A stretch of DNA of 64,000 bases from Podarcis melisellensis. Taxonomy: Eukaryota. The stretch lies in the NCBI GenBank assembly GCA_964234715.1, contig OZ174278.1; one strand, 5' to 3'. A program made the position numbers and the translations under genes. The notes under the pieces are model-generated. The model ran no database searches, was not told the origin of the DNA, and saw only the letters and a program-made list of their open reading frames with translations. Below are positions 13,701 to 46,009 of the stretch, one piece after another (position 1 is the stretch's first letter; each line of letters opens with the position of its first letter).

Positions 13701-15465
13701 AAAGCTTTTATGTGGAAATCTTTGAGATTTCCTTTAACCGTAGTCCCTACACCCTTTATTAGCTTCTAAGGTTACACAGGGTATTGCCTGACTTGGGCAT
13801 GGTTCAGATTGAAGGTCTTGTTTTAAAATAAAGCATGGGCAACATGTTAGAGCCACTTCACACGTTTTGTTTTCACCCACCAAACACTGTCATACTATTG
13901 GAGCTGTGTGTAGCGTGAAGAGAAATGACTGAGCATCTTCATACACTGAAGAGCTACCATTGGGTATGGCTCCTTTGGCTCATACTTCTTGCTCACACTT
14001 TTGGAGTCTACTGCAGCAAACCCTGGTGCACTGTTGAGTGCCACCCCACCGTATGGCCACCCATGTGCTTTCACACTTCAGAAAGGAGCTAGCAGACCGG
14101 CCACGGTAGCAAAGGAAGGAATAAGCTGTAACACAACATTCATTTATGCAATCCTGATTTAAGCCACAGCTACCGACAATTGTTGGTGGTTCCTGGGGTG
14201 GTGGCAGCAGTGGCACCTCTCCACTGGTGCTGGGAGAATGCACCACTACTGGTACCTAACAGTCCCAGATCTGCAGGCTGCTTTCTAGAAGTCTGCTGCA
14301 AGGACGTTATAGTTATGTTTGAAATTTTGCTATTGCTTGGGAAGCTGTAGCATTTCCTCCTTTCCCAGTACCTTATGAAACATAACCCACCCAGCAGAAA
14401 CAGTTCATTGAAGGTATGATGATCAAATCTCTTCACACACACACAGCTTGATCTCAACACTGCATAATGGTTGTTTTTCCCCTCAGAAAAAATTGCAATA
14501 TTATCCCCTTTTCACACAACACTGACTCTCTAGCTGGCAAGTGAGGCACTACAAAGAAGAGGCATGTGTCCTGACTAGCAATGCTCTGACTCTCTCAGCT
14601 GCACAGGGTGCACTATGTAGGTGTACATGTGCCAACCAGCAGGCAATGGGCCCAAAAGCAGATTTATTTTCTTCCCGTTTTTGTTATTTATTTAATCATT
14701 TGATGATTATCAGTAATCAACAAAACTCTGCTCCAAAAATATTACTTAATATCATAATACTTTGCAAGTAAACACAAATTAACGCAAAATTACAAGATTT
14801 CTTCTAAAAAAAAAAATCAAACCTGACTGAATTTGCTTTTGCGGGAGGTAATTATTTCCTTGTCAATGTTGTAATACTGTACTGGGCAATCAGTTTCCCC
14901 CAAATTTATTTCTATATTCACCTACAATTCTCGCTCTTAGGTGCTATTTTTTCCGTTACAGCCAAACTTTGTTAAGCCTTTCTTTCCAGGAAGGGAGTAC
15001 TGTAACTTTATGATTTGTTTATTGCTCCAGTAGTTATGGAAGCAGTCAGATGCCATAACTTTAGAACAACTTCCATTTACATTGGTGTCCAGAGGTGTTA
15101 AATGAATGATCAATTCCAGAGTTTGGGACAAACCAAGTTAAGAAGCAGGGATGCCAAGAGAAGTATAAGGCAAGTACTCAAATTCATATGGAGAGAAGTA
15201 AAAGATGTGCTCCTAAGCATGGCATTTCCATCCCAATTTCCTGGATTTCAACCAGCTATAAAGACTACATAAATATTATTTGACAATATCGCCACTGTAG
15301 GATTTCTTTGTGGAACAGAACTTCATGAATTTCTTAAATGCATTTAACACAGCAATATAAAGGGGAAATTCTGATCCACGGACCACAGCTTTTCTGAATG
15401 AATCTCTGCAACAGGCACTATTGTCATGTTCTCTCACCGATTACCATTTTGAGCTTTGCACTGAC

Positions 15466-15885
15466 CTGAGGTCTGGAAGTCTATCTGGATCGGGTTGGAT
15501 AAACCATTGACTGCCTCTCGCCACATGCCTCCACCCCCTGGTGACCATGCAGTCACCACACAGCGATACAGCCCAGCATCAGAAATCTGTGTCTGGTACA
15601 TCCTGTAGCGGAACTCGTTCTCCTGAACCTTTTCCAAGACCACACCATCCACCCGTTCCTGGTCTGTCCAATCTTCCCGTCTGACCACTGAATCTTGATT
15701 GAGAGAAATTATGCGAGTGGTCCCATTAGGAGTTGACCGATCATTCAGATGCTTCTCGGCTGTAATGAGGACTGAGTAACGAGGAGTCTTGATGTTCTGG
15801 GAAGACACCTTGCATGTCATTTCAAAGGTGTGCCCTGCCATGAAGAATGGCTTCAGTTTCACAGCCTCTACGGTCAGCATATAAT
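15466..15885 (-). CDS. PTGFRN: PTGFRN coding exon (exon 6 equivalent): Ig domain 5
   Basis: KPFFMAGHTFEMTCKVSSQNIKTPRYSVLI...RVDGVVLEKVQENEFRYRMYQTQISDAGLYRC...LSNPIQIDFQTSG, near-identical to recalled mammalian PTGFRN. Acceptor tctcag|, donor CAG|gtcagt; 420 nt. Confidence 0.96.
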
Positions 15886-16384
15886 CTGAGAAGAGCAAAG
15901 GAGGCACAGACATAAGCTACAAGCAAAGGATGGACAAACATATACGGCAAGCAAGGGATTAGTGCTGCAATCTAACATTCAGCAGTGCATTTCATGTTAA
16001 AAAAAACCTGAGGAGTGGGCATCATAGTCTGTTAGAGGCAAACACACAAAGAATCTGAGGACAATATGCAAACCTAATAGCATAATTCCCACTGTGTTCA
16101 ATGGGGCTACTCTCAGGCAAGTATGGTATGCACAAGACCACAGCCCAAGTGACACAGCCCTTAGTGGCTACTTAGCAGAATGTTGTGACAATACATGAGG
16201 AACAGAAGCAGCAAGGAAAGGTAGGCATGCAGAATAATTATATACTGAGAATTTAATCTTCATGCTTGGGTGAAGTCCTAATTGAGCCTTAATAAGAAGT
16301 TAGAGTTTCAATTTAACACTACGCAGTGGTTGCCTAAATGGGCATGGGTAAACTTAAGAGTCTGGAAAAATAGCTTTACCAAAT

Positions 16385-17740
16385 TTTGTTTATTTATTTA
16401 TTAATTATCTACACCGCCCTTCATCCAAAGATCAGAGTAGTTTACAATATTTTTTAAAAACCACAAAAATAAATAACATAGTAGCAAACAAAAACAATAT
16501 CCCCCACCACAGTTCAAAAACCATACATTGGCTAATTAAACAAAGGTCTGGGAGAAAAATAAAGTTTTTGCCTATTGCCTAAAGATATGTAATGAAGATG
16601 CCAGACGAGCCTCCCTGGGGAGAGCATTCCACAAATGGGGAGACGCCACAGAAAAGGCCTGTTCTCCTGGCAGCACACGAAGAAGGGCCTCAAATGATGG
16701 TCAGTTCATATGGGGAGAGGTGGTCCTTGACATATTGCATACCTCTGTCATTTAAGATTTTACAGGTCAAAGCCAGCACTTTGAATTGGGCCTGGAAACT
16801 AATTGGCAACTAGTGCAATCAGGCCAGGATCAATGTAATATGCTCAAACCGTCTTGCCCCAGTGACTAACCTGTCCACTGAATTCTGCACCCACTGTAAT
16901 TTCCAAACCATCTTCAGAAGCAGTCCCAGATATATTGTTTTGGAGGAATACAACCTAGAGGTTAACAGTGAATAGGCGACAGAAGTCAAGCTATCCTTGT
17001 CCAGATAGGGGCACAGCTGGGCCACCACCCAAAGCTGATGGAAGGCACTCCATGCCACTGAGGCCACCTGAGCCTCAAGCAACAGCAATGGATGCTGAAG
17101 TACCCCCAAGCTGCATACCTGCTCTCTCAGAGAGAATATACTCCCATCAAAAGAAAGCCATCTCCCATCCATCCGGTCTAAGGAACTGCCCACTAGCAGT
17201 GCCTCGGTCTTATTGGATTGAGTTTCGGTTTATTGGCTTTCATCCAGTCTATTACCGAGGCAAGACATCAGTCCAGCACATCCACTGCGACACCTGCAAG
17301 TGGAGCTGTGTGTCATCGGTACATTGCTGACAGCATAGTCCAAAGCTCCAGATGACTCCACCCAGCACGTTAAACAGCATGGGGGATAAAAATGGAAGCC
17401 TGAGGAACCCCACATTGAAGACTCCATAGGGTCGAAGAACACTCTCTAAGCATCCTCATCTGGAATCGACCATCCACGTAGGACCAGAACAACTGCAAAG
17501 CAGTGCTACCCACTCACTAACTCGGACAGCCAGTCCAGGAGGATACTATGGCTGATGGTATCTAAAACCACTGAGAGGTTAAGGAGAGTTAACAGGGATG
17601 CATTTCTCTCCTGACAGGTGTCATTATACAGGGTAACTGAAACAGTTTCTGTGCCAAAGCTGCGCCTAAACCCTGTCTGTAATGGATCTAGAAAATCAGC
17701 TTCCTCCAAGATCACCTGATGCACCCACAGTACCTCCTGT
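16385..17740 (-). mobile_element. Degraded, internally deleted L2-clade LINE
   Basis: Minus-strand remnants LDPLQTGFRRSFGTET, LEAQVASVAWSAFHQL, QNSVDRLVTGARRFEHIT; (TTTA)n tail at about 16388-16402 on +. Ends approximate. Confidence 0.85.
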
Positions 17741-18093
17741 TGCTGATGATTTAGGTGACATTTGAGTGAAACAAAGCTTAATTCAGGATACAGCATTCAT
17801 TTGGTTTTCGGATTAATCTCACAATAATTGACAATACTTCAAAAAATCTGCAAACTTTTAGCATTTCTGCTACTATTATTTTTAAAAAAACAAAACACCC
17901 AAGTCTTCTATTTGATCTTTGACTTGTTTGCAAGAATATCAGGTATGCATCCACGATTAGGCAGGTTATGTTCCATTATCTCAGAAGTACTTTATCTCAG
18001 AAGTTACCTACTTGCAACCATTTAGCATAGTGTCAAGTTCTGGAAAGACACCTATTCACTGTGCGTATTGCCTCACCTCCATTTTTAAGACTA

Positions 18094-18482
18094 AGGTCTA
18101 AAGGCAAAGGTAAAGGACCCCGGATGCTTAAGTCCAGTCAAAGGCAACTATGGGTGTGGCAGTCATCTCACTTTCAGGCTGAGGGAGCCGGCATTTGTCC
18201 ACAGACAGCTTTCTGGGTCATGTGGTCAGCATGACTAAACCGCTACTGGTGCATGGAGGATTGTGACAAGTTCCAGAGCACATGAAAACACCGTTTACCT
18301 TCCCGCCACAGCAGTACCTATTTATCTACTTGCACCGGTGTGCTATCGAACTGCTAGGTTGGCAGAAGCTGGGACAGAGCAACAGGAGCTCACCCCATCG
18401 TGGGGATTCGAACCGCCGACCTTCCGATTGGCAAGCCCAAGAGGCTCAGTGGTTTAGACTACAGCACCACCCACGTCCCTCC
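18094..18482 (-). mobile_element. Sauria SINE
   Basis: Same family; B box GGTTCGAATCC; TSD tttaagacta at 18084-18093 and 18483-18492. Confidence 0.92.
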
Positions 18483-21287
18483 TTTAAGACTACTGGACTT
18501 CTTAAGGCAGAATTGGGATATATCATGTGCGCAGTCTGAGATGGTGGTGGCAATGCAGTCTCATAGGCCATATGAATACAGGATTGTTGACATTTACATC
18601 ATATGTATAATGAACAGACAGAGAGAAATATTAAGGGACATATCTGTTTGGGAGGCTTGAGCATATATTTTTTTGAAGATATATATATTTGAAAAATAGG
18701 TTAATATCCTTGAGCACATAAGTAATGTGATGTCTCATTTTGTCCCAAAGATGTATATTTTTTTTCATACAGAGCTTGCTATTGCTGCATTAAAAATAGT
18801 TAAACACAAACACACATAGAGAATCAGTAAGAATTCCAACAGCAGTGAGGGGAAAAACACTATTACTGTAAATAGAAAAATATGTAAGATTTTTAGTGAA
18901 TGCAAAGTAAAAGTTCCATGAACTACCACAATAAATGATTAGCAAACCTGCAATTGAATATTTAAGAAGAAATTTGGGGAGGGCTAGGAGAAAAAAAATA
19001 GGTAAAACATTAATTACAGCCAACCTTAAGGGGGGGGGATATAAAACCATGCATCAATGGCATCTGACATCTTATAAACTGAACATGATTTATAAATCTC
19101 TCTGAGGATAACTGCTGGGAAAACCTCATGCAGATTATATGCCACATATTTTGGGGATGAAATAAAATTAAAAGTTTTTGACAGTTAGTGCTGTTTTATA
19201 ATCAATCACAATATACAATATTCCAAATAAGATGGTTTAGCCTCTAAACCATTTTGAAGGCTGCACTGAATGCCAAAAAAACCAATAAATCTGTCAACAG
19301 CAGCTAAAATATCAATAGCCATGCATTGAAAAAAGAAAGAAGTTCCAGCTCTACTTGATTGATACTGTAGGATTCAGGTTAGACCATTAATGCAGAAATT
19401 ATAAATATAATATAGCATAATATAAATTATTATATTTAGGCCCATGAAAATAATCAAAGATCAGCATTTATCAATGATAAAGTTGGTGATGATGTATGGC
19501 TGTTTACGTTGTTCTAATGAATTATCTGGCTTTTGCTTTATGCTACTTATTACCAAACTTGAAAGGACTTTATTTATATTTGTAGGTATTAATGCTTGTT
19601 TGTTTGTTTGTTTCTCATGGTAACCTGAGAGTTTAAATAAACAAAACGATTTGAATCAATAATACTGTTGCTATACTACTAAGACACATCCTGCAGCAAC
19701 ATGGAATACAGTGCCAAAATAAACATTTTTCACTAAACAGAAGTTAATATCATGCAGAACTGAGCCACATTCTGAAGGTGCACAAATGTAAATAAGATGA
19801 ACTGTAAAAACCGTATAGTTTACTGCTCATTACCTATCATACAACCTGAGAAGAAGTTTACCAGTACTGGTAGTTATCACGGAGAGCTGCGATAAAAAGG
19901 TATTAAATGCAAACATGTTCAAAAGTATTGTTACACACTTTTCATCTACCAATCTGGGCATGATAAAAAAGCTTAATATATTATGAAGAATGAAGTCAGT
20001 ATCCAGATTTATAAGATGGATTCATACCTACATTGGAGGGATTTATTTTTTTTTTGCCTGATCCTGCAAAAGTTTTGTTACAAAGTAGGGCAGCTTAGTT
20101 CAGATAATGGCACTTTGCCAAAACTGGTCATATGTAAAAGCAGCAGCAAACATTACATCTAGGCTTTGTGATCAGTTCACAACAAATCATCAGGACTACA
20201 GCTCGCAGGGCCCTTCATAAGAATATCAAATCTACTGCTTCTATCACCATCCTATTTTAGCAGGCAGAAGCTGACAATTCATGAAATATAGCATTTTAGT
20301 CATATTTTTGTGACTAGTCGATCAGTCTAAAAAAAAAAGTATAGCCTGTTGCTGCTATCTGAAAAGGGCTTGGAATTACACTAGGAAATGCAACTTGGTG
20401 GTGCCAAACACTGGTTTCCCCTCAACCTGCTCCCTCATTTGGCCTCTACATGTTTCTACAGGTACATCACATACATTTTAGCTTTTCTGTATGAAAGAGG
20501 CAGGTCACGTACCATGAAAGCAGGGCTTTTATTTATAGATTTGAACTAGCTTGGCATTTAGGCTGTTTGAACAACAATCCATTTTCTTCCAATAAAAAAG
20601 CTGGCTGAATATTAAACACAAGGTGAATCTTTTACAAGGCAACAGGGAAATAAGATATACCAAGCTCGCAACACACTTCACAAAATTAAAACTACATACA
20701 ATAATACTTTTGTCCTCCCCCAAGAGATCCGCAAGGTACTTGTTTGTGATTACATTTTGCAGTGCTTTTGCCTTCAAGCAGCAGTTTTCACAATGAGTAA
20801 ACACTGCCTAGAAGATGAGAAAACTGGGTATGACAATCAGCACTGTACAAAGGAGATCACAGTACAATGCTATCTAAAGGAAACAGCAAAAGGTGGGGGA
20901 AGCACAGTGCGCAAACTGCTAAGCACCAAACTGCTCAATTGCTCATGTTAAAAATAGTTTAATGCTGCAGACTCAATTCCTCAAAGGTGAAGATCATTTT
21001 CTTGAATGGAAAGCTCTCAACTTCCTACCCCCAAGAAAGCATGCAAGAGTCTTCCGTCCCATCAATAATTAGCACAGATACATAGTGTCGTGCCTGGAAA
21101 ATGGGTGGTTTACTTGGGCAAGGATTGTGGCAATGTAGAACACACTTTTAAAGTCTCTATGCTGCCCTGCTGAGTGGAATCGTTGTCCTCAAGCTATGAA
21201 ACCTGGAACAGCTGAACAGGGGCAGAAAACTAGAAAAGGGCACAAGGAAAGAACAGTGGTGTGTTTTGCATATGGAATGAATAAATA

Positions 21288-21935
21288 ATAGAATCCTGGA
21301 ATTGTAGACTTGGAAGGGACCGTGAGAGTCATGTAGACCAACCCATGCAACACAGGAATCACAAATAAAGCATCCCTGATATATAGCCATCCAATCTCTG
21401 CTTAAAAACCTCCAATGAAGGAGAGTCCACTAACTCCCAAGGAAGTCTGTTCCACTGTTGAACAGCTCTTACTGTCAGAAAGTTCTTCCTAATGTTTGGC
21501 ATGAATCCCCTTTCTCGTCGTTTGAATCCATTGGTTTGGGTCCTATTCTCCAGAGCAGGAGAAAGCTAGCTTGCTCCATGTGGAAGGAAGCCCTTTAGAT
21601 ATTTGAAGATGACTATCCCATCTGCTCTCAGTCTCCTCTTTTCCAGGATAAACTACCCAACTCCCTCAACCATTCCTCATAAGGCTTGGTTTCCAGACCC
21701 TTTATCATCTTGGTCACCCTCCTCTGCACACATCCTAATTTGTCAAAACTCCAAATGTGGCCTGACCAAGGTAGAATAGAGCAGTACTATTACTTCTAGA
21801 AGTATAGTCTCCAGATCAAGAGAATAGCATTAGCTTTTCTTTTTCCTTTTTTGCAGCTGTATCACTTTTTTTGCCTCTAGTTAAGCCTGTGGTCCACTAA
21901 GAACCCTAGATCTTTTTCACATGTATTGCTGGCAA
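21288..21935 (-). mobile_element. CR1 LINE 3' fragment
   Basis: Reverse-complement CR1 3' end (atagaatc...ttggaagggacc...ccatccaatctctgcttaaaaacctccaatgaaggagagtccac...ctgttccactgttgaacagctcttactgtcagaaagttcttcct). Confidence 0.85.
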
Positions 21936-25480: not shown

Positions 25481-26700
25481 AGGAATAACTAGGCAAACAC
25501 TTCGTCAACTTACTATTATGCAGTTGCTATACAGAAAAGTAGAACAGTACTTCAAGACCAATTCTGACTTTATAAAAAGCATTTCAAGTGTGGTATTTCA
25601 CATTTCATGCCTATGTTATCAAGTTGAAGCTGGTGTTAAGTGCTGCAATTATGATCCTGAGACTAGGAAGTAAATGTCTAAGATTGACTTGGTGTTTTTT
25701 TCCCCTTAATGCCCACATTCCTGAATAATAATGTACACTGAAAATAAATTGTTTGTGTTTCCATGTTTTATCACCTCAACTAAGCTATTGTGTAGAATAA
25801 CTGCAGCACATTTTTGCTGGTGCACTTAGGCCACTGAATATTGACTCAGGAGGTGGAACTAATTGCAAGTATCAGATTGCAGTGCTCTGGGTTTTGGATA
25901 AAGCTTCAAGGCCCTCCCCCCACCCCAGAAATCCCTACTTATTTCACAAGAACTGCTGCATAGTACAAAGTTTAAGGGTAGCAGCCTCCGTAGCATAATT
26001 GCTTTCTTTTCATATAAATTGCTTCCATGATCTCCAAAACGAGTGCACTGTTAGCATCTTTTCATGGTCCTTTTTTTGTACTGCATTTCAGAAATACAAA
26101 GGCAAGGGATCATTTAATTTCAGACTGAAGACAAGGAGATAGAACAAGTTACATTATCACCACCTCTCTCTCATTTTCCTTGTCTTAATCTAGTGCTCAA
26201 AACCAATGACTGCAAGAACACTGAGGTTGTATACTTCTTTGCAAATAGTTTAACAGATGCCCCTAATATACCACTGCTTTCCTCTCCTGGAGAGGAAAAA
26301 AACATGGGCACGTTTTGCAGAATTCATGAGGCAGCAGCGTTCTCTGTATCCACCTCTCTAGAAGGAAGTAAATAATCGTGGGACAGAAAACAGGGTTCTC
26401 ATTACAAGGTTTCCACCCAAGTAGCTTTCAAAATGTACTTAAATACCCCAGGGATACTAAATGGCTCTTGGGAGAGCAAGTATACTGGCACCTGCAAGCT
26501 AAAACCGATTAAAAGGAAACCCCCATGTTCACACATTTGTCTTCCAGATACTTCTCTGCAGCATCTGGCTGACCACCAACGGCAGACTGGAGAGTAAGGC
26601 ACACGGTAAGTGGATTCAAGGCCAGAGATAGTGATTTACAAGAGGGCTACTGCTGTATATAGCATTTTGTCTTCAGCTTATCTGCAGTCACAGGGTGTAT

Positions 26701-26885
26701 GGGGTGTTAGGGGAGGGGTAGTACCTCTGGTGAGGGACACACTGTGCTCCTTCTGAGGTAGTCTGTCCATCTTTGCTCCCCACTCTGAACTCAACTCTCA
26801 CCTGTGGCTCATGGGAACTGTCAGCATGTGACAGTGGCCACACCTTGGGAAACGGCTTCGACTGGCTGATTAAACCAGGGGAGGG
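26701..26885 (+). ncRNA. HDV-like self-cleaving ribozyme fold (degenerate copy; catalytic C replaced by T)
   Basis: Manual folding: P1 26701-26707/26840-26846; P2 26795-26805/26874-26885; P3 26806-26808/26837-26839; L3 starts TC; GG at 26847-26848 (P1.1); P4 26853-26857/26864-26868; J4/2 (T)TAA 26870-26873. Segment order matches the HDV double pseudoknot. Confidence 0.6.
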
Positions 26886-26995
26886 TAGCCAAAGGGTCTC
26901 AAACCCTCAGCGAGTTAGGGATTCCCCTTCATGCAAAGGCAGCAGACTGAGTGGACAGGACCAATAGTGGGTCCAATGGTCAGGAAGGTGGTTTC
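26701..26995 (+). mobile_element. Probable 5' UTR fragment of an RTE-clade non-LTR retrotransposon (or derived non-autonomous element)
   Basis: GC-richer island that begins at G1 of the HDV-like fold. It resembles RTE 5' UTR sequences as I recall them (ctctcacctgtggctc...ggtctcaaaccctc...gggtccaatggtca). No TSD or ORF found; the 3' boundary is approximate. Confidence 0.55.
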
Positions 26996-29900
26996 CACCA
27001 CCCCCAGGCTCAGCCACACATACGAAAGATCTGCGTTGTGGGTGAACCCAAGATGCATTGTTACAAGTCTGTACCAAAGCCTCCAACTTGGAAAGCCCAA
27101 CAACCTAGTTTTAAACACATCCATTTGCTCACTTATCCCCTGGGTAAATTTGAATTTGACACCTTTCCAAATCCTGCCCTTCTGTTTTCCCGTGGGCTAA
27201 TGTTAAGTACTTTAATAATGAGAGAGGTAGCCTGGCCTTCTGCCCTCGACTGCCCAGACAAATGCCTGCCTTCCTGTAATCACAGGGCAACAATCCAACT
27301 CCCTATTCACATTTCCTCCCCTCTTCTAGGTAAATTGTTTTTGCTATAATAAGATGCAAGTTTGTTCAGTTAATTCCCTCTCTTCTCCCTCACCCCCCAT
27401 CCTGCCTTGAGTATACTCAAGACAGTCTATACGGAAACCAAGAAACACTCCTCCTACATCTCCTGGTATCTCCCTTGTTCCCTGAAAGACAAGACATGCC
27501 AGAAACAATTTCCCCTTTTAAAAAAGTCTAGGATTTTGGACAGAATTTTTAAACAACTAAGAACCAATGCCTTCTTTCCTGGTAACAGAAGGGAGCAATA
27601 AATACATTTATTTTGTTTGATTTTCTCTGTAATGATTTGTTTTATTTTTTATTTTATTTTTCGCCAGGAGCAGGTTTCAAGGAGGTTAATTTCACAATTC
27701 AGTGCCATGCCTGGCTCATATTAGAAACCCCCCTATTTACATGGTGTTCCCTTTAAAGTGTTTGTAATTACTCTACAAATATTAGGGTCAGTTGTATACG
27801 GTTTCCAACCAGCCTAAATTGGTAGGCAGTGGCACCAGCCTTGAGGTACCTTGAGGTACCAAGAGACTTTTGAGTACTAGGGATGAGACTGTCCCAAAGT
27901 AATTCAGCCCAGCTTTGTACAGTACTGAGTGTATGGCTCAGTTATGATACTTAGGACATCTTAAAAGATAGATCTTGAGAAAGCCAATTCTGCTGACCCT
28001 TTAGACCTTGCTCGGTCCCAAAAATATGTTCTTTTTGCGGGGGGGGGGGAGTTGCTGTCTAGGGAATTTAGATTTGATACACAAGATCTAAGATTGTGAA
28101 ACTGAATTAATTTTGAATTAGCATCTCTAGCATAGACCAGATTATCAGTGTTTAGCCGAACTGAACTGGTATTAGGTTTTCTTCAGCAAAGCTATACCCA
28201 AGGAATGATGAGTTCTTATGGCTACCTCTATACATCTAATTTTAAGCTGGGAATTGAATCTGGCTGATGAGCCACATACTTATTCCCCTGAACTCCTGTG
28301 GGTCAAGTTTAGACAGGTGGGTAGCATTGTCAGTCACCTGACATCACAATGATATCAGGTGAGCCACTTTACCAAAACTATCAGTTGACTATTCATACTT
28401 ACAAAGCACTGTGTACAGGGAATTGCACATGGCTTTGAAGATGCTGTCACTCAGCTGATCAGTGATCCTGGCAAAGCCCCTTTAGGCCAGATATATCTTT
28501 ATCTGACCCACACCTGGCATCATATATGAATAGTTTATTTTTAATGTGATATGTAAATTGGGCCAATGGCAGGAAGAAGTTTAAATTCGAGATCCACGGA
28601 GCTCCCTGAACATTCCATATGTCATATATGATGTCAGGCCTAGGGCAGATGGACATGGTTTGGTCAAATAACCTAGTGAGACAAACTGGGATGTCTTGAG
28701 GACCAAATTATGTCTGTGGTCTGCAGCTTCTTCACTGCTGTTTTAAATGAACTGAGGAGGAGACTTATAAAAACTGATTGACTTGGTAAATGTTTGTTTT
28801 CATAAAGCTTGAATCCTGTGTCTGTGTCGGTTTATACTGTCCATTTATGACTATGCGATTTTAAAATTGAAGTGGGCAGGGGATGTACAGTATGTTGATT
28901 TTGCTCACTGATGTTTAACCAATTTAATGCTTCTTTAATTTAATAGTTTATGGTATTGTAAATTTTAGTTTCAGGCACTCTATAATTTGCTATCTTCCTT
29001 TATCTGTTCTAAGCTGAAAATCAAACCAGTTTCCCTACTCCTTTACAGGATAAAATTTCAGCTTCAAAAAGAAAATCAGATTAGCAACAAGGGAAGTAGT
29101 TTATAGTAGCTTGACTGGTATATTGAACTCCTTCCGAACCCAGCCGTAATTTCTATTCCTCCTCCTCTGCCTCTAAAAACTTGCCTTTGATGATCAAGAG
29201 ATATTAAATATGAATAAGAGATAGGAGAAGCTTGTCAGTAAAAAGCTACTGATTCTTGTCTCTGAAAGGCAGGCCTGTTCTTAAGAAGTACTCCTTGATT
29301 TGCCACTTAGCTCTCAGTTTCCGTTTGTGATCGATCTTACAAGGACTAAGTATCTATCTTAGACTTGTCAGTGGAGTACAGTATTTTGCATTTAATGCAA
29401 TCCACAGTGCTCTAGATACAGTAGAGTTAACCTTCAAAAACACCAAGTGCCTACACTCTTATCAAGTGTATAGTGGCAAAATGAAAAGAGGAAAAAATTT
29501 AAAGGCTGAGAGAGCCTTTCTAGTTTTGTGGCATGGCCAGACACATACTTACACTGTGTGTGTGGCATTGTTGTTTTTAAGTACCATAGGTCAGTCCCAA
29601 ATATGATGCTCACTTAGGGTAGCTATTATGTCCCACTTTGCTTTACTTTGAAGTCATCCTCTGGTTGAAGGGCTGATCAGTCCAAGTCCACTTTCAAATG
29701 AAAGAACTATAAGGAGGAAGAGCAGAGGCTGCCCATCAGCAGTTAGCTCCTGGACAGCAAACTGAATAGGCACACAGGTCAACTGGGCCAGCCTTGCCAT
29801 TGACAGTGAGAGATGTATTGCACTTCTATTTCTATTACAGGCATTGGGTCAGATTCACCTTACAAACGCTGTCAGCAGAAGGCTTCACAATAGGACTCTG

Positions 29901-30757
29901 CTCCCCTCCCCTGTGCCTCCCTAAATTGCTTTGGGGTGGGTGGTTGGGAGAACAGTAGCGAGAGGAGAGGGGAGCTGATATGCTTGTGCTGATGAAACAT
30001 TTGTAACAGTGTGACGTCAAATTCCACCCACTATTTCTAAGTTTGCATATTATATAAACACATGCAAATTTATGCAAATCTGTGCCCTCTTTTTGGCAAT
30101 ATGTAAGCTTACCCAGCACGCTATTTATTTATTGGAAAACATGTAAGGGACCCTCACGGGCAGGCAATTATTCTCAAGCAATGTTTCAACATCCTACAAC
30201 TACTGAAAGCATGTTTGAAAGGGGATGGATTTGTTATAATTCTGCTCTGGCAGCATACAATCAGATAAATGCCAGATTTAGTTTTCTATTCTAGATGCAA
30301 ATCTTCAGATTAAAAGGAAAATGTCTGGTCAAGATTTGCATTTTAACTAGCTGGCTGTTAAGTCTTTTCTAACACTAGGTACATTGTCTCAGTATCTTCA
30401 ATATCCCCCACAAACATCCCTTGAAAGCGCAGGGAATATTACAGACTCAGATTAAGTTACCTATAATTATTGTTGTATCAGCATGACATATTGAGAGAAT
30501 GCCATTAAAACAGTCAAGTTTAGAAAATAGTATGTTAAAGGATCCAGGAGTACAACAGACGTCAGGTACAATGTAAGGTGGGGGGAGAGAGAGAAGGTCG
30601 GTGGATATTGTTAAAAATAAGAGTCTAGTGGAATAGCTATAGATTATTTCAGATTGAATATTCCCTTTCCCCTTAGCTTCCTACCTATTTATTCTGTCCA
30701 TCTTTTGCATTTTAGGGCTGGCCAGTGTAGCACACTGACCTTTTCTTAAGGTCACTA

Positions 30758-30999
30758 CAGTGGTACCCCGGGTTACAGACATTTCAGGTTACAGACGCTT
30801 CAGGTTACAGACTCTGATAACCCAGAAATAGTACCTCAGGTTAAGAACTTTGCTTCAGGATAAGAACAGAAATCGTGCAGCGGAGGTGCGGCAGCAGCGT
30901 GAGACCCCATTAGTTAAAGTGGTGCTTCAGGTTAAGAACAGTTTCAGGTTAAGAACAGACCTCCAGAACGAATTAAGTTCTTAACCTGAGGTACCACTG
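30758..30999. mobile_element. Tc1/mariner (Tigger/pogo-like) MITE
   Basis: TIRs cagtggtacc.../...ggtaccactg flanked by TA on both sides; internal caggttacag/caggttaaga repeats. Confidence 0.9.
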
Positions 31000-32343
31000 T
31001 ATTGCCACTGCCCAATCTTCCTCCTCAGATATTCAGGTTTGCAGATATAGTGAAGGGAGTCCTACAGCGTCCTTAATATTTCCAAAAACTGGAATGTTCA
31101 GAGTGAACGCTACAGATCTCTAGTTCAAGTATTTCTACTTCTTCAAGCCACTGGGCCAATTCACGGTGCCTGGAAAAGTTTTGCCTATAGTCACAAATCA
31201 TTGTTAAAAGCTATAGGCAAAACGTTCCTAGGTCTCAATGCTTCTCATAAAACAAAATTTAATAAAAATAGATATCCTACAAACAAGAGCTGTACGTAAT
31301 CCACAGAGACTTAAGTCCAACACAGAGAACCTCCAGCGTATGAACAGCAGTGGGCCTGAGGTACTTCCATCATTTCCTGGCATGTAATCTTAACAAAATT
31401 CAGATTGCCACAAACTCTAGAATGCAATGCTGAAGGCTAAATCAAGAGATAGCATTACAGAGATGGTGGCAGACAACGGTGAGGAAGCTGTGAACACAGG
31501 ACCTCAAATACTACATGACCCACCAGGGTCAACAGGAGGTCAGGACTATTGCAAATCTGGAGCTAAGCCACATATTCTGACTGGTTTTATGTCCAGATCA
31601 TCTGCCTGAGGCTAGGACCACCAATGTTCAGTCCCTGCAGAGAGCCATTCCACTGCAGATCATAATCAACAACCCTCAGGTCAAGTGCTTTAAGGAGCTG
31701 CAAAGTCTAGTAAAAACATATGCACAGACCTATGTAATTCAGTTAACATAGTTTAGTTTTAATGTTATTTGGTTTACACAGAGCAACTCAAAATTAAGTT
31801 AAGCACATGAGACCCCAACTCATCACTTGGTAAGAAGAAATGGGGTTTGAAAAGCAAGGGGGCGGGGGGGGGAGAGAAACCAGCATCAGAAACAAAGATG
31901 AACTGTCAAAATACTGTTTTGCACATCTGGCAAGAAATGGAACTTGCTAAAATATCAAGGAAAACTGTGTTTACTTTAAAATAAATAAAAAGCAGGGGGA
32001 GAGAATGCCACACATGCAGCCACCACATTTCAGATCACTCAAAGCACATTCCAAAGAGTAGAAACAGATTTCCACAGTCTAACAAAAATGGGATAAACCT
32101 GTCTTTCACAAACAAGGCTACATTTTAAAGTCTGAGCAGCTATTATACTGTTTATGCTACATTTCTCTCAAGAGACACAACAGCTAAAAAGCCTCGTATG
32201 AGTGACAAGCAATTTGGATACTGTAGTTTACAAAGAAAAGCTTCCATTTCAGTCCAGGAGGAGGAAAACATTCTTAGCCCAAGTATGTCACACAAATTTT
32301 AAAACGTCACATTTTTATCAGCCACCAGAGGAATCCATATATT

Positions 32344-33507
32344 TGACCATAGCATCCTTCTGGACCGTCTAGAGGTGCTGGGAGCTGGGGGCACTGTCAT
32401 ACAGTGGTTCCGCTCCTTCCTCCTGGGCCGTGTCCAGAAAGTGGTGGTGGGGGGTGAGTGTTCAGACCCCTGGGCTCTCACTTGTGGGGTGCCTCAGGGT
32501 TCTGTCCTCTCCCCCATGCTTTTTAATATCTATATGAAGCCGCTGGGAGAGATCATCAGGGGGTTTGGACTGGGTGTTCATCAGTATGCAGATGACACCC
32601 AGCTCTACCTCTCCTTTAAATCAGAACCAGTGAAGGCGGTGAAGGTCCTGTGTGAGTGCCTGGAGGCGGTTGGAGGTTGGATGGCGGCTAACGGATTGAG
32701 GTTGAATCCTGACAAGACAGAAGTACTGTTTTTGGGGGACAGGAGGCGGGCAGGTGTGGAGGATTCCCTGGTCCTGAATGGGGTAACTGTGCCCCTGAAG
32801 GACCAGGTGCGCAGCCTGGGAGTCATTTTGGACTCACAGCTGTCCATGGAGGCGCAGGTTAACTCTGTGTCCAGGGCAGCTGTCTACCAGCTCCACCTGG
32901 TACGCAGGCTAAGACCCTAACCTCCCCGCGGACTGTCTCGCCAGAGTGGTGCATGCTCTAGTTATCTTACACTTGGACTACTGCAACGCGCTCTACGTGG
33001 GGCTACCTTTGAAGGTGACCCGGAAACTGCAATTAATCCAGAATGCGGCAGCTAGACTGGTGACTGGGAGTGGCCGCCGGGACCACATAACACCGGTTCT
33101 AAGAGATCTGCATTGGCTCCCAGTACGTTTCCGAGCACGATTCAAAGTGTTGGTGCTGACCTTTAAAGCCCTAAACGGCCTCGGTCCTGTATACCTGAAG
33201 GAGCGTCTCCACCCCCATCGTTCAGCCCGGACGCTGAGATCCAGCGCCGAGGGCCTTCTGGCGGTTCCCTCATTGCGAGAAGTGAGGCTACAGGGAACCA
33301 GACAGAGGGCCTTCTCGGTAGTGGCGCCCGCCCTGTGGAACGCCCTCCCATCAGATGTCAAAGAGATAAAGAATTACCTGACGTTCAGAAGACATCTTAA
33401 GGCAGCCCTGTTCAGGGAAGTTTTTAATATGTAATGCTGTACTGTTTTTAACACTGATTGGGAGTGGCTGGGGAAACTCAGCCAGATGGGCAGGGTATAA
33501 ATAATAA

Positions 33508-33538
<31 letters not shown>
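32344..33538 (+). mobile_element. 5'-truncated L2-clade LINE: RT C-terminal half, 3' UTR and (TAT)n tail
   Basis: RT motifs GVPQGSVLSP, YADD, LNPDKTE, LGVILD; L2-type C-terminus LDYCNALYVGLP/QNAAARLV/HITPVLRDLHWLPV. One +1 frameshift near 32918; microsatellite tail at about 33500-33538. Confidence 0.92.
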
Positions 33539-33539
<1 letters not shown>

Positions 33540-36500
33540 GGTGCATGAATATAAACCAATCTGCAGACTTGTTTCACACAAACTAACTTCAGGTCGCATC
33601 TGAAAACCATGTGCAGTAGCGCACGGTAGGTCCACATGCCCCCCTCCCCCAATCCCACACTGTCTGTTCTATGTTTTGCTTTAGATGTTAGTCAGATCAG
33701 GGCTTTAGTTAACTCTTAGTTAAAATTTTTAAATTTTACTTTACAAAACATAGAAATTGCAGAGTTCTGTTTTTAAAATCAGATTTGGGTATTTCGTATG
33801 GATGTGGTATACACTTAGCCCCCCTCAATGAACTGAAGACACAGAGAGGCTTTTGCCTTTGCTGAAGCCATCTCTTATTTTCCCGTAGGATTTTGGGTCC
33901 CAAATATGCTAAGAATAAATTGTACTAAGGAAGGAAAACTATTATCTGAGCCACTGCAGGTATATTCGGTCAGTTGCCTCCCAAATGCACCCTTGATAAG
34001 CCAGGGGCCCTGCTCCATGCTCTTCTGCCAACAGGAACATAGCAGGGCCTATAAAAGACAGGGCCTTCTCTGCTGTGGTGCCTAACTTTAATATTAATTT
34101 AATTTGTTACTTTAATATTAATTTATTGATGGGTATGGGTTGTTGTGTATTTCTATTGACCAATGTAAGCTATCTTGATTATTATAGGAAGGCAGGGTAC
34201 AAATGCTGCAAATAGATAATGCCACTGAGCAAATGGGAACAGGTCACTCATTATAATAAAAGAGGAAGGAGGAATAGATTACAAGCAGAAGGACTAGATC
34301 ACACATATTGTTGGCAATTTGCCATCCGAGTCATAATCTAGGAAAGGTCAGCATTTTAAAAAAGGTCAAGCTCTCTTGGAACAGCAATATATATGATAAA
34401 GACTGTACTGCATCAAATGTATGAGAAAAGGCATTTTGTTTTTCAAAGGTCTTATTTTTCATGCAACACTTTTGAATTTGGACACACATTCAAGGCACTG
34501 ATCTCTCAGCCTCGCTCTGCTTGCCTGCACTGTTGCTGCTGCCTCCCTTCTGTTCCCCTTCCTTCTGTACTGCAGCAGCCACACAACCATCCCAGCCTTG
34601 AAAACCATTTGGAGACAATTATAGCTTTGCAGTATATAAATTGCTTAAATAATAAAAACAAATCAACAAACAAACATGATTTTAAGATTGGAGAACACAC
34701 CACAAATGCATCTGCAAGACTACAATCCATTAGATAAATTCTGGACTCTAGACCTAATGGTATGAAAAGTGGAGGTGGGGCTCTTTAGATGGTAATGGAC
34801 ATTATTCCAGACAATCTTACAGGGGCCCTTCTTTAATTCTTGCACTGAAATGTGGCAAGCCAGTCCTGCTGCATCTAGGGGAAACCCCTGTCCAGAGGGG
34901 CCCAGGACTTCTGCCCCAATTCTATCCCTGACAGCAGCAACAGTGAAGGCCCAGTGCTAAACATGACAGCTGTAGGCATGACTCTCCTCTCCTTTTTAGC
35001 CACAAAGGGCTACTAGCTCCTTAAGAGAGTCCCATGTATGCAACTGATGCTCACCTAGCTCTCTGGTGAGCAGCAGCAAGTACGTGGAGAGCACAGGGTG
35101 AATGTGTTGTTTGCCACTCAAGTGCTTGCCCATGGGCAATACCTGCTTGGCCCAATGGAGCAAAAAATTGCAGAGCAGCTTGGCATTCATCAGGCAGCCA
35201 ATAAGCTGCTTTTAAAACACAACAAAACTTAATTTTATGACACAGAAAGATATCCCAAGAGAATGAGTTTTAGTGTTTGTGATGGAAGTCTGGGCTGCTA
35301 ATTTAAGCATTCCTGCCTGACGATAGTGAGTTGTGCAATGCATACGTGTAGTTAGTTCTTCATCCTTTGAACGATATTACTGTATTAGATAGAAGCCCAT
35401 GGCCAAGGAACATGCTCCTAGTCCCATCCCACAGCTGAATTGCACACTTGCTCTCAAAAAGTTTGCCAGTGTGGTGTTAGCGCCAGAAACTCTAAGCCTG
35501 GATGTTTCAATAAGCATCTAGTTACTAAAATAATCACTGCATGCCGATAAATTAAGTGAGCCACAGATCTTTCCTCCTGATCCACTAATTTATTCCTTTT
35601 GCACTGAACCTTTTGCACTGAGCTGCAAGTTGTCCATTCACTATGTGACACTCTTAGACACAAGGCCAGGGTTTCCCTGCTGACTTTGTCCCTTCTTTAT
35701 CAGTTAACTTTTCGTTACCAAGCAAGAGGAAGAAGAAAGATACCTATCTTGAAAAGCATGCCTCAACCAATGAACGGCACAGCAGAAACTAGTTCAGATT
35801 TTCTGGTGCCAGATTAAGTTTTCCCCCAGGCCTTTTAAGGTTGCTGCAGCCTTTTAAATCTGTTTTAGATTTTCGGTTTCATTCTTTGTTCTTTTAGCTT
35901 TGGTTTTAAGGTCTTGATTTTTACCTCCTCCCATACTTTTATAGTACTGCATTGTATGACTAATTTAAGCACAAAGCTTAAGTTTTCATTTATTTTATTT
36001 TAATTCTGTAAATGCCAAGAATGTTTATTATAGGGTGGCTTGTAAATGCCATTTAAAAAAAAACTCCTGGTTGGCAGTGGGGCTTCAGTGCTCTGCATAC
36101 CTCTTTGCACCACATCATTAAAAGAAACCAAAATAAAATTATGTAAACTAATGAAATTTGCAGAATAAGGGAAATTGTACAATAAATGGGCTTTTTTTTG
36201 CACTGTTAATAGAAAACACTGGTTTTTTTGTTTTTGCCTTTCATGTAATGCAGGGCTTTGACAATGAGCCTGTCTGCCATGACACTGGGATCATGACATC
36301 CTTCTCCAGGGGATGAGACCAGGAACTCAGGGTGGAAGCCTCAAATTTACACTTGGAAAAAGAGGAGCCCATTGTGTCAGTACCTCTCCAGCTGCTGGGT
36401 GCTGCATTGCCTTCCTCTGAGAACTCCAGCTCAGAAGCCTTAGAAGAACCACAGCCTTGCCTGCTCTGCCAGAGTCAGTGAAAGATAAAGCACGCAGAGT

Positions 36501-37981: not shown

Positions 37982-38443
37982 TCTGTGGAAGGAATTCAAC
38001 ATTGCCAGAGTGCTTGCTGGATGGAATCATTTCCCCTCTTCTCCCTCCACACATTGTTTTGGGTGTTCTCCTGATGCCTCCAAGTCAATTGGGGGGGGGG
38101 AGTGGAGGGAGCTGGAGCTGGGGGACAGGAAAGCGGGGAAGCCCTGATGCACTAGTAGCCCTGTGTATGCTGCCCTAAAATATTTCTAGCACAGGACTCT
38201 TAGCAACCTTAGCTTGGAATTATTGTTGATTGTGCTGAACATTCCTAAATGGTACTGTGCTCTTTGATCTCATCATTAGCCACTTTCTTCCACTTTCCCA
38301 TCCAAAGATGGCAATGGCAGATGTATATACATCTATCAAAACCCTTTAGAAATTTTCCATCTCGGAGTCTCTAAAGGCAAGCCACTGAGTCACCAACAAT
38401 TTGCATCACAAGTTTTTAAAGTCAGGCTGTACAAGATTCCTAC

Positions 38444-38869
38444 CTTGTGTAGACCATAAAATGCTTACAGGCACAGAAGCCACATCCTTGATCTTTATCC
38501 AGCTGTTATTTCGTTGCCTGCTCCATGAAGAAATTACACAATAATAATCTCCTCTGTCTGCTTCAGAGGTCCACTGGATTCGTAAGCGGAAGGTGTCCAC
38601 AGTTGGTTTAGAGAAAATAATTTCCCCATTCTGGGCCCGGTGTTTGCTTCTGTCCCCAACCACCAGCGTCCAGTCTGCATCCATGGTGGCAAGAAGTTCA
38701 TCTTTCACTACTTCATCACTGCGCATAGGTAATCGGTAGTACCATGAGACAGTGAAACGCACATTTGTTTCAGTGTTCTGTGCCTCTGTGATCCTACATT
38801 CCAATTCTGTGGGATCTTCTGCATACTTAGGTGTTTTAGTCGCATTCAAAAACACATGGTAAGTTGGCT
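38444..38869 (-). CDS. PTGFRN: PTGFRN coding exon (exon 5 equivalent): Ig domain 4
   Basis: EPTYHVFLNATKTPKYAEDPTELECRI...NVRFTVSWYYR...ELLATMDADWTL...DRGDYYCVISSWSRQRNNSW. Acceptor ccgcag|, donor AAG|gtagga; 426 nt. Confidence 0.95.
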
Positions 38870-41800
38870 CTGCGGAGCATTTTGAAAAGCAGGGAGACAG
38901 ACAAGGAAACAAAAGTATGAAATAAAGACCAATTCAGAATACAGGCTACATTTTCACATTTATCATTTCAGAACGGCAACATTCTTTTGGCATCTTGCAA
39001 GTCATGGCATAGGATGGGGCATTTACTACTTAGCTGGTGACAGTGGACCATGTAATTCCCAGAAATGGAGTATCTTCATAGCATGCAATCCCAAGTCAAA
39101 CAAAAGGCAGATTCTAAAGCCAACATTTAGTAAGTCACACTATACTGTAGGAATTTCATAATACAACATTCTGGTTACAGAACACTGCATTGCAATTGCA
39201 AAGTCTGCCTCTCAGGGAAATGTTTCATTTTAATGAACATGCTCCCCATTTTGGAAGGGCATGCCAAGAGCGTGTCAGGTTTCTGTACACTGCTTTACCA
39301 TTCATTTTATTGCCCACTTCAGCGACCTTGGCAGAGGAAAGCTGGCACTAGAGCAAGCCAATATTGGAGAGAATCCCACATTTACTTGTTCCTGGTGTTG
39401 AATGCCAGTGCTAGAAACTGAATACCCTTCAAGTTAACGTTACTGGGGTTTTTTTAAAATACAATTTCTGACAGTTTCATAATCACAAGTCTGAAAGAAC
39501 TATGAAGGGCCTACTTTCTGCTCTTAGCAACCATATTTAGGATCCCAGAAAAGAAGAAATACAATGCAATAACAATATTTATAAAGGTAGTGGAGGGAAA
39601 GGTAGTTAATGAGCCACAAAAAGGGTTGGGTTGGCCAATCATACCTCATCTTAATAAGTCAAGATCTGAATGAGGCTTATGGATGCACACACAGTGCCCT
39701 TGCTCCCTGCTTTGCTACAGTTTACTATTTTGTCCAAACAAGGAAACTATGGTTAACAGTTTCTGAACAAGCCAGGATATGAAAACTTAGTTTGAAGTTG
39801 GATTGATACCCTTACTTGTTCCACAACAATTAATTTCCTGGTTTGGCTGATACAGGAAGCAATAGTTAATCAACATCTCCTTGGTTTGTTAGCGGGAAGG
39901 GAGGAGCAAAAGAGCTGCTCATGTGCGGCCAAAAGGCTTGTTCTCGGCTCAGCATAATGGTATATGATAATCTGAACCAGCCCACATAATTCACTGGAGC
40001 AGCTTGCTTCCAAACAGAAGCACCAACAACATTTTCATGTCCTCATTAGGAAATAGAAGAAAGTTGAAGGCAAATGGGATGTCAGCTAATCATATCCAGC
40101 ATTTGGAAGACCTATAGGGAATAGGATGGCTGGGGCAAGTTTTGGCTTTGACAGGAGTGCTCCAGCTAGTCTCTTCACACTGACTCTCAGACAGAGGATT
40201 TAGCAGGAAGGAATAAAAGGCTTGCTGGATAAGCCTCATTCCTGCACTCTTGTCAGCTGTCAAAGAACAGCCTTGCTGACAGTTCAACGACTTAATACCC
40301 TGCCAAGCTCTCAAACTTCAATCAAGTAGGAGGGGGCTGCTGTTGAATCTTGGATGCAGTTTATGTACTACAGATGAGAATTCCTCTCCTGCTTTTCCCA
40401 CCCGCAGGCAATGTAAGATCATTTGAAAAACATTTTGCTCCTCCCCCTTAACCTGCATCAAAATAATTACTAATTTGGGATGCAAAGGTGAAGAAATTCC
40501 CACTGACCAACAGAATACTTTCAGTGCAGAAAAGAGGCACCCTATTCAAGGCAGTTTTTAAAGCTATGGATGCTTTCCAGATAATATTGGTAACAGAAGT
40601 ACACTGAGTGTACAGAATCAGTGGCACCTGATATCTGTTGGATGAGAAGAATAAGAGACAAGCTCTCTCTCATAATTAGGCCTACAGCAAGCAGGATGGA
40701 AATCATTAGGCCATATTGAGATTTCCTTTCCTTTCCTTTAAAAACTTGCACAGCTTATTCTCATTCCTCTAAGGCTATAATTCTAAACTAACCTATTAGC
40801 CTATTGAACTCAATGGCTGCATTTACACATAGTGCTAAATACTAACTGAAGTTTCATAAACCATGCTAGGTAGTGCACAAGGGCTGTTTCACTATTCTAG
40901 TCCTTGAGAGCAGAGAAACAAATAATAAAAAGGCAGCTGGCTTAGTTTCATCCAAATCCAAGGTTGTGGTTTGCATTGCCTAAACAAACCAACATCACTA
41001 GCCAGGCTTACACTATTATTTGTTATCAGCTTATACTCTTGGGCTTGCTATTAAACGGTAACACAGCCAAAGAGATTTACTTGCAGATAAACATGTTTAA
41101 AATTGGATTGTACAAATGCTGCAGAAGTGGATTTTCAGCTCTCTTGGCTCTCTGAAGAACAAGAGATGCTGTGGCTGTCAGGACTGGGTTATCATCAACC
41201 AGATCTTGATTTGTGCTACGATAGCATTCAGAAGTGTATATGCACAATGCTTGAATTTCAGCAGAGTATAAGTAGAAATGCTTGCTCCCACTGCTTGAAA
41301 GGCTGTCAAGAATCATCTGGCTCCTAATTGCAAAGTCAAAAGCCAGAAACTTGATTTTTTTAATTATCCTCTAAGAGATGCTGACACGTCAAGGCAAACT
41401 CTACAGAACAACATGGTTCTTTAGAAATTTGTGCTAGGGTTTCAGTTTTCCATATCTCTCCTGCCTGGATGCTCATTTCCTAGAACATCTGCATAAAAAG
41501 CAGATCTCAGTAGCTTAAGAGTTCAGCCAGAAAAACAGAGTTAGTGAAAACACAGTTCTCCATAAAGTCAAAGCTGAATATTGGGGTAAGGAAAAGTGAA
41601 AAACAATGTTTTTGTCTAGACAAACTTCTGGTTCAACTCCTAATCTTTCTATATGATATAACATCCATTAAATAATAGAAAGTGATCTATATTATTTTTA
41701 GGATTTCCCCAAGGAAATATGGCAGATCTGACAATGGGTCTGAAAGAACCATTATAGTAGTGACTGTGGGATTAGTCCAGTCGTCCAAGCCACACTCAAG

Positions 41801-42792: not shown

Positions 42793-42845
42793 TACACAAG
42801 AAAAATTATCCATCAACTTTATAGCATCACCACCCAGCTACTCAC

Positions 42846-45949: not shown

Positions 45950-46008
45950 CTAGGGGGGGAAACAAAGGATTGTAAGTTAAAATTGCAAGAGAGAGTGAGT
46001 GTGTGTAA

Positions 46009-46009
46009 T

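Follow-up and report, generated by a model that had tools for sequence, protein, structure and literature searches.

The 64,000-nucleotide (nt) stretch of Podarcis melisellensis contig OZ174278.1 analyzed here (hereafter the window, to which coordinates refer unless another sequence is named) carries on its - strand five immunoglobulin (Ig) V-set exons of an EWI/IgSF3-type gene (15434-15913, 38406-38912, 42838-43272, 44514-44960 and 45555-46082) and on its + strand, in an intron of that gene, a short region resembling a hepatitis delta virus (HDV)-like ribozyme. We interpret this region (26692-27000), with a probability of roughly three in four, as a mutated fragment, free of coding sequence, from the 5' terminus of an RTE-type retrotransposon of the class without long terminal repeats (non-LTR), from a family whose RNA begins with an HDV-like ribozyme. 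An initial annotation of the window had proposed such a ribozyme at 26701-26885, and each of the segments that it named was found at the coordinates it gave; it had also placed the copy antisense to the host gene, as is indeed the case (copy on +, exons on - from 46082 down to 15434). Homologues of the exons carry the precomputed domain Ig_IgSF3, while the gene name originally suggested, PTGFRN, was not confirmed, a sequence search of the PDB with one Ig exon having returned no match.

Homologous copies and element context

The evidence that carries this interpretation comes from homologous copies in other assemblies. An exhaustive phmmer search of 1.84 billion representative proteins with the stop-free translation of 26734-26964 recovered six short, spurious open reading frames (ORFs) that share ..LTCGS..SGHTPGNGFDWPAKPGEGS.. 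with the ..LTCGSWELSACDSGHTLGNGFDWLIKPGEGS.. of the window; three further entries in that list (P0013, P0016 and P0020) are unrelated repetitive proteins, and protein searches by word index with the ORFs of 64 and 132 aa, together with an exact look-up, gave no match. The copies discussed below are L003 (Logan SRR14646457), L004 (JGI 3300001372, from Youngs Bay sediment in the Columbia River estuary; PMC4589670), L005 (Logan SRR31759337), L006 (a contig of the cestode Schistocephalus solidus; genome PMC7305300), and L007 and L008, from two ENA metagenome assemblies, which are near-identical, have their upstream flank in common and are therefore counted as one lineage. The window copy with L003, L004, L005 and L007/L008 makes five independent copies, to which a partial copy from S. 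solidus (L006a) is added. The closest match is to L004, of which positions 68-291 align with window 26697-26925 at 75% identity (E 4e-32); under more sensitive blastn settings the alignment extends to window 26697-27000 against 68-373 (72% identity, E 2e-40). The alignment of L005 starts at 26701, and L003, L006, L007 and L008 align across the core, over which the window is 72-81% identical to the other copies. Two sets of candidates from short-word DNA searches were discarded as chance matches: L001, a 24-nt match to a 20-mer of the decayed copy in a scan of metagenome DNA, and L009-L032, matches to a 23-mer of the family core, mostly in Novosphingobium and including one viral contig. About 40 nt upstream of the ribozyme are common to L007 (43-81) and L008 (203-241), and the two contigs part ~35 nt downstream of it; they may be a single locus with different downstream assemblies, or a unit within a larger host repeat.

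The element itself is seen most completely in L004, where the homologous stretch opens a 5' untranslated region (UTR) of ~830 nt that is followed by one intact ORF (896-4099, 1067 aa) with an apurinic/apyrimidinic (AP)-type endonuclease domain (Exo_endo_phos, 6-230) and a reverse transcriptase domain (RVT_1, 553-822). This ORF starts ~520 nt past the end of the aligned stretch (373) and ~645 nt past the 3' end of the ribozyme (251), no ORF1 of any size precedes it in L004 (upstream ORFs are at most 85 aa), and an (AAC)4 run lies ~45 nt downstream of its stop codon, where an RTE element would be expected to have a very short 3' UTR closed by a short simple repeat, the end of the element resting here on a single copy. 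Its nearest Atlas clusters consist of endonuclease plus reverse transcriptase (EN+RT) proteins that are ~1070-1110 aa long, with Chordata as their main source. In S. solidus (L006 5411-5704), one partial ribozyme copy, starting shortly ahead of P2, and downstream of it three tandem repeats of its 3' half (P3'-P1'-P4-J4/2-P2') lie a few hundred nt upstream of a frameshifted ORF homologous to residues 3-1062 of the L004 ORF at ~50% identity. The proposal of an RTE-type element thus holds up, with an EN+RT ORF after the ribozyme in both L004 and S. solidus, as far as layout goes; a single ~1000-aa EN+RT ORF without a substantial ORF1, as expected of RTE elements, is present in L004 and absent from the window copy. 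The window stretch is almost certainly a copy of the 5' end of this element. Judged from these sequences, the known hosts of the family would include a lizard, a cestode and an estuarine eukaryote, plus the sources of three other assemblies. The ribozyme cores of L004 and S. solidus are 75-85% identical and their proteins only ~50%, which suggests strong constraint on the core, and perhaps horizontal spread.

The fold in the window copy

On the + strand, the family homology begins with the heptamer AGGGTGT (26692-98; GGGGTGT in L007/L008), our preferred 5' strand of P1, which forms 7/7 pairs with 26840-46 and has the candidate cut just 5' of it. A proximal G-rich heptamer, GGGGTGT (26701-07), was taken for P1 in the initial annotation and can likewise form 7 bp with ACACCTT (26840-46), two of them G-U pairs. 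The J1/2 peripheral domain (26701-26792) folds in the RNAalifold consensus as a long, P1.2-like hairpin with a basal helix of 26702-06 with 26788-92. P2 as originally quoted, CTCTCACCTGT (26795-805) with ACCAGGGGAGGG (26874-85), comprises 10 bp with C26875 bulged and A26800 mismatched against G26880; we delimit its strands as CTCTCACCTG (26795-26804), with compensatory changes at two positions in L004, L005 and L007, and CAGGGGAGGG (26876-85), where G26880, against T in the family, is the source of the mismatch. P3 pairs GGC (26806-08) with GCC (26837-39), a combination found in 5/6 aligned copies. The 5' part of L3, TCATGGGA (26809-26816), begins TCATGG and so has the equivalents of U20 and C21, with A26811 at the position of C22, where other copies have C or T, and with G26814, the sixth position of L3 and the equivalent of G25, invariant across copies in alignments A2-A4. 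An extra hairpin within L3, ACTGTCA-GCATG-TGACAGT (26817-26835), has a counterpart at the same place in all lineages.

The 3' strand of P1, ACACCTT at 26840-46 (ACACCCC or ACACCCT in the family), is followed by the GG of P1.1 (26847-48), whose partner is L3 positions 2-3 and which can form one pair in the window copy, and by J1/4, GAAA (26849-52), which reads GCAA in L004, L005, L007/L008 and L006a and ACAA in L003. Then come the P4 hairpin, CGGCT-TCGACT-GGCTG (26853-68), and J4/2, ATTAAAC (26869-75), where most of the family has GC(A/T)(A/G)AAC and where T26870 occupies the candidate position of the catalytic C. Drawn with the proximal P1, this fold would have an L3 of 28 nt and a J1/2 of 87 nt. 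Homology to L004 in blastn continues through the remaining 5' UTR sequence (26886-27000). Right after the 3' strand of P2, a possible small hairpin with a GGG...CCC core occurs at ~26889-26912 and in L004 at ~255-280, its core being AGG/CCT in L005. A GGTGAG(T/C) motif, similar to a 5' splice site, comes directly after this hairpin in both L004 and L005.

Core residues and covariation in the family

Two residues that the window copy lacks had been predicted for the family at large, and the homologues bear this out. The C at the catalytic position of J4/2 is present in L003, L004, L005, L007/L008 and L006a, that is in every copy except the window, within a family J4/2 of G-C-(A/U)-(A/G)-A-A. 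The start of L3 is UCC in L004, L007/L008 and L006a, or 3/5 other lineages, and UCU in the remaining two (L005 and L003), the UCA of the window being unique to it; in S. solidus L3 reads UCCUCG, identical to HDV. GG-GCAA follows P1 in 4/5 other lineages, with AG-ACAA in L003. One pair of P1.1 is C-G in 6/6 copies, and its other pair is C-G in three, U-A in one (L003) and a U-G wobble in one (L005). The family possesses both the catalytic C and the P1.1 complementarity whose absence had been named beforehand as telling against a ribozyme. The P2 of the family is a perfect 10-bp helix, and it is maintained through compensatory changes from C-G to A-U (L007/L008), from C-G to U-A (L005) and from U-A to A-U (L004).

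The pseudoknot as initially drawn, evaluated on alignment A3 (six rows, five of them independent), has 91.6% of cells paired compared to 36-47% in slid controls, with five pairs changed on both sides and a covariation score that was reached in 0/500 shuffles. P4 is paired in 100% of cells of A3, varying between G-C and G-U alone. For the long J1/2 hairpin, a structure taken from the alignment on which it was tested, 90.5% of cells are paired (41-59% when slid), eight pairs show double changes and the covariation score was again reached in 0/500. When the core, including that of S. solidus, is aligned to covariance model (CM) R1, an alignment biased toward the structure of the model, 96.3% of cells are paired (27-53% slid) and there are six double-change pairs where 1.7 +/- 1.1 are expected (0/500). 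The full revised structure of 60 pairs has 90.5% of cells paired (36-49% slid) and 16 double-change pairs, against an expectation in shuffles of 9.0 +/- 1.9 (1/500); its covariation score was exceeded in 0/500. The hairpin within L3 is paired in 100% of cells of the CM alignment and has three pairs changed on both sides; its compensatory changes occur in several lineages, and it varies in length, being shorter in L007, and has another sequence in L006. With this hairpin included, L3 is 22-28 nt long in all lineages, compared to the ~7-8 nt expected of the class; the sequence expected there, a start of U-C-C (or U-Y-C) and a conserved G for the U-G reverse wobble, is matched by the UCC or UCU and the sixth-position G of the family, and the expected length is not.

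The 5' strand of P1 and the predicted site of cleavage

The copies have a mean pairwise identity of 29% over their flanks, which rises to 47% across the 9 nt that precede 26701 and to 70% between that point and the end of P2; the upstream flanks are unrelated, so the repeat does start about where it was first placed, near 26701. The distal heptamer, 9 nt upstream of that point, reads AGGGTGT in the window (26692-98) and GGGGTGT in L007/L008, while L003 has it in the degenerate form GGGGGTT. The L007 version makes 7/7 Watson-Crick pairs with the 3' strand of P1, where the proximal heptamer of that copy has two mismatches, and forcing the distal P1 in L007 costs just 1.1 kcal/mol, because the proximal strand is already engaged at the foot of the J1/2 hairpin in the minimum free energy (MFE) structure. 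Bases 2-6 of the proximal heptamer (26702-06 in the window) pair with the terminal bases of J1/2 (26788-92) in 96.7% of cells, and one position of this basal helix is divided between A-U (three copies) and G-C (three copies), where pairing to the 3' strand of P1 instead would leave an A x C mismatch in the A-containing copies.

On account of the pairing in L007, the low cost of forcing it and the covariation of the basal helix, we place the 5' strand of P1 more probably at 26692-98 than at 26701-07, which more probably forms the closing helix of the J1/2 domain. Of the P1 originally drawn, 26701-07 with 26840-46, the 3' strand is thereby retained and the 5' strand reassigned. The predicted site of cleavage moves with it, from 26700/26701 to the more likely 26691/26692, favored by the 7/7 distal pairing in L007. 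If the distal P1 is right, L004 and L005 would be copies shortened at insertion, by 5 and 9 nt respectively. The distal and proximal pairings could also alternate.

A proposed role for the ribozyme, and the state of the window copy

We hypothesize, by analogy with the established ribozymes of R2, L1Tc and RTE elements, that the first ~195 nt of the family RNA would fold as a large HDV-like self-cleaving ribozyme, composed in order of P1, a ~90-nt J1/2 hairpin domain, P2, P3, an L3 with UCC...G and its hairpin, P1.1, GCAA(C), P4, the J4/2 C and the 3' strand of P2. The J1/2 hairpin domain would bring P1 near P2. In this scheme the element would have no promoter of its own and would be transcribed within a longer RNA, of the host or from read-through. 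By cutting directly 5' of its own first G, the ribozyme would then free an element RNA whose 5' end coincides with the element boundary, and it may also help translation of the downstream EN+RT ORF. The homology, the 5' position, the core residues and the compensatory changes are observed; catalysis and the exact cut site are predicted.

The window copy had been judged probably dead, and we find it so: it has T26870, A26811, the P2 mismatch, and GAAA in place of the GCAA of the family, and its differences at critical sites include T26870, A26811, G26880, TT at 26845-46 and A26850. With U in place of the catalytic C, a broken P1.1, a mismatched P2 and no ORF, it cannot act. The copy should be inert in its antisense, intronic position, and of no consequence to the host gene. 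What is left of the element is ~300 nt (26692/26697-27000), none of it coding; homology to L004 does not continue beyond 27000, and tblastn with the L004 ORF found no match in the window. No second copy was found in the window by self-comparison, nhmmer or CM R1, and none in L002, a contig that spans the same gene (see below).

Alternative explanations

One alternative concerns the history of the copy and is compatible with a ribozyme. Instead of the remnant of a deleted full-length element, the window copy may tentatively be regarded as a short, non-autonomous derivative of ~580 nt with a ribozyme head, similar to a short interspersed element (SINE). A possible left target-site duplication, CTGCAGTCACAGGG (26682-26695), the final 4 nt of which extend into the start of the element and would be junction microhomology, is 12/14 identical to a possible right counterpart, CTGTAATCACAGGG (27274-27287); if this duplication is real, the inserted unit would be ~580 nt (26692/96-27273) and non-coding. 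It also fits such a unit that copies of long interspersed elements (LINEs) are normally 5'-truncated, yet the window copy holds the 5' end alone, and that L007 and L008 stop soon after the ribozyme too. However, a 12/14 direct repeat flanking 26696-27273 could arise by chance with a probability that we roughly estimate at ~0.05, a duplication being possible, and the SINE-like history rests on a single copy. In addition, 27001-27273 has no match in L004, including the 3' end of that element, and no simple-repeat tail; no RTE-like 3' tail was recognized before 27274. Given the lack of a match for 27001-27273, a deleted full-length copy and a ~580-nt unit are equally possible.

A second alternative accepts the conserved 5' UTR structure as real and assigns it some other function, as a protein-binding site, an element resembling an internal ribosome entry site (IRES) or an internal promoter, the match to HDV being coincidental or vestigial. 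Several of the points that weigh against our interpretation would speak for this one. L3 holds a hairpin of 17-19 nt that is possibly incompatible with an HDV active site, is foreign to known HDV-like ribozymes and, like any other insertion in L3 of this class, had no relevant description that we could find in the literature. None of the HDV-like models of Rfam (HDV_ribozyme, CPEB3, drz-Agam and similar) matches L003-L008 at E <= 10, a miss that would be expected if the long J1/2 and the insertion in L3 are penalized. P1 is without a clean double-change pair, varying between G-C and G-U or by mismatch, and its 5' strand is ambiguous: of the distal one, L004 keeps only the last 4 nt and L005 none. 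L004, the only copy with an intact ORF, thus lacks the distal strand and is mismatched (A x C) in the proximal strand, and in L005 the proximal strand forms a perfect, G-U-initiated P1. As general limits on our interpretation, the sequences are few, and the pair counts rest partly on structures from the same alignment. The window copy itself has no ORF and no recognizable 3' end. Moreover, the RNA of the R2 ribozyme is also protein-binding and IRES-like (PMC6765202). Against a purely non-catalytic structure stand the conserved unpaired residues, which match exactly the residues of HDV that make up its core and its catalytic site (the C of J4/2 with NAA, the UCC...G of L3, and GG-GCAAC), the covariation of P1.1, and the start of the fold at the element boundary, as befits a ribozyme for 5' processing. 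We consider this second alternative unlikely, and the fold of the family, as predicted from its sequences, is probably that of an HDV-type self-cleaving ribozyme.

Taken alone, the window copy gave little indication of a ribozyme. In Rfam no family reaches the gathering threshold in the window, and no HDV-like family matches 26400-27200 at E <= 10; the MFE of 26701-26885 is unremarkable with respect to shuffles (z -1.15), and in the ensemble computed without pseudoknots P1 is out-competed, its probability there being zero and the cost of forcing it 11.3 kcal/mol. With a strict, canonical HDV descriptor the window gave 0 matches, and a loose descriptor tuned to the candidate found one site, compared to 0.54 per Markov-shuffled 64-kb window, with at least one site in 44% of shuffles. 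Before the homologues were known, a chance assembly of segments was accordingly rated by far the most likely explanation; structure could not separate a single decayed copy from chance, and the homologues alone settled the question. It is because homologous copies conserve the fold with compensatory changes that the observation now stands far above chance. Despite the descriptor rate, the empty Rfam search, the ordinary MFE and the single copy in the window, the idea that short complementary segments came together by chance in unique intronic DNA is refuted by homologues in five other assemblies (E down to 2e-40) with a covarying, conserved structure.

Other features of the window

An orthologous 60.8-kb contig (L002; ENA ERZ27241762 k141_159336), a vertebrate host contig in a metagenome assembly and clearly non-human, is colinear with the window over four of the five Ig exons at 72-79% nt identity, and shares with it two conserved intronic blocks (window 41407-41527 and 40138-40360). 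The gene calls on this contig read TGA as W in sense, such that the called proteins run through TGA stops.

A Pfam search of the stop-free pieces on the + strand of 26000-33600 gave as its sole match a 5'-truncated reverse transcriptase (32303-32917). This was considered as the coding part of the ribozyme element and rejected, as it has no tblastn similarity to the L004 ORF and does not extend back to 26701. It is part of another, 5'-truncated LINE (32303-33539, +), in which an RVT_1 fragment (profile positions 83-204) is accompanied by a C-terminal ORF lying in a different frame and by an (ATT)10.7 tail, (ATT)n at 33508-39. From its YADDTQLY and LDYCNALY motifs this LINE may be L2-like. Its last ~220 nt recur at 57950-58175 with 79% identity, and degenerate ORFs on the - strand at 16819-17796, probably an old LINE remnant, resemble the C-terminal part of its 32913-33431 ORF and have no Pfam match.

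Further repeats include a SINE-like repeat of ~370-380 nt in four + copies (9069-9456, 18101-18483, 55246-55592 and 62379-62757) that are 75-85% identical mutually; tandem duplications at 5854-6278 (214 nt x2, 98.6%) and 55702-56342 (~315 nt x2, 82%); and pairs of dispersed repeats at 78-80% identity, one inverted (21288-21487 and 53348-53544) and one direct (30755-31003 and 47263-47510).

Relation to known ribozymes and significance

HDV-like ribozymes are found at the 5' ends of promoter-less R2, L1Tc, baggins and RTE elements (PMC6765202; PMC3774820), which are transcribed from introns or upstream elements, and an IRES-like role has been proposed for such ribozymes (PMC6765202; PMC3774820; PMC7761336). 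In large HDV-like ribozymes, a P1.2 helix in J1/2 beside P1 and P2 speeds the reaction (PMC4908430). The closest parallel to the family described here is the drz-Agam-2 type of RTE ribozyme, for which we rely on the accounts of Ruminski et al. 2011 in PMC6765202 and PMC3774820. Both stand at the very 5' terminus of an EN+RT element without a promoter, both are large with a J1/2 helix beside P1 and P2, and both have a core of P1, P1.1, P2, P3, P4 and the J4/2 C. Unlike that type, this family has a hairpin in L3, occurs in lizard, cestode and estuarine hosts, has no match in Rfam and is known here from sequence alone. The R2 ribozyme is comparable in its ~180-190 nt, its long J1/2 and its 5' processing of a co-transcript, which for this family is predicted, and a conserved G in its L3 is required (PMC3774820); R2 is, however, specific to 28S ribosomal DNA and its P1 may use upstream 28S sequence, whereas this family occupies varied sites with unrelated flanks.

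The genomic HDV ribozyme, of which the sequence excerpted from bioRxiv 10.1101/025023 has GG-GCAAC after P1, agrees with the family in that motif, in an L3 of UCCUCG (identical in the S. solidus copy only), in a J4/2 of G-C-RAA and in a 3-bp P3, as far as that excerpt goes. It differs in its length of 68-85 nt, in which J1/2 takes up 3 nt and L3 7 nt, and in its source, which is a circular RNA agent and not a retrotransposon. The mammalian CPEB3 ribozyme is likewise an HDV-type fold in a vertebrate intron, but is single-copy, at one conserved locus and on the sense strand, unlike the decayed, antisense repeat of the window. The twister-variant ribozymes at the 5' end of a Schistosoma RTE (PMC8501958; PMC7761336) are similar in their proposed 5' processing for the RTE superfamily and in their flatworm host, and belong to another ribozyme class.

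Ribozymes of HDV type at the 5' ends of RTE elements were thus already known, chiefly from insects and other invertebrates, and a search of the literature for HDV-like ribozymes of squamates or of BovB-type elements returned no relevant paper. This family adds a lineage carried by a vertebrate and present in a tapeworm as well, with a large J1/2 domain and a conserved hairpin in the active-site loop. It is tempting, at somewhat less than even odds, to speculate that an active HDV-type ribozyme tolerates or even needs a helix in its catalytic L3, in an RTE lineage of squamates, a cestode and other aquatic animals that has possibly spread horizontally. If true, this would be a structural subclass overlooked by present descriptors and Rfam models; if the ribozyme is active, search descriptors and Rfam models will need widening, and the L3 hairpin would serve as a probe of how much the HDV core can tolerate.

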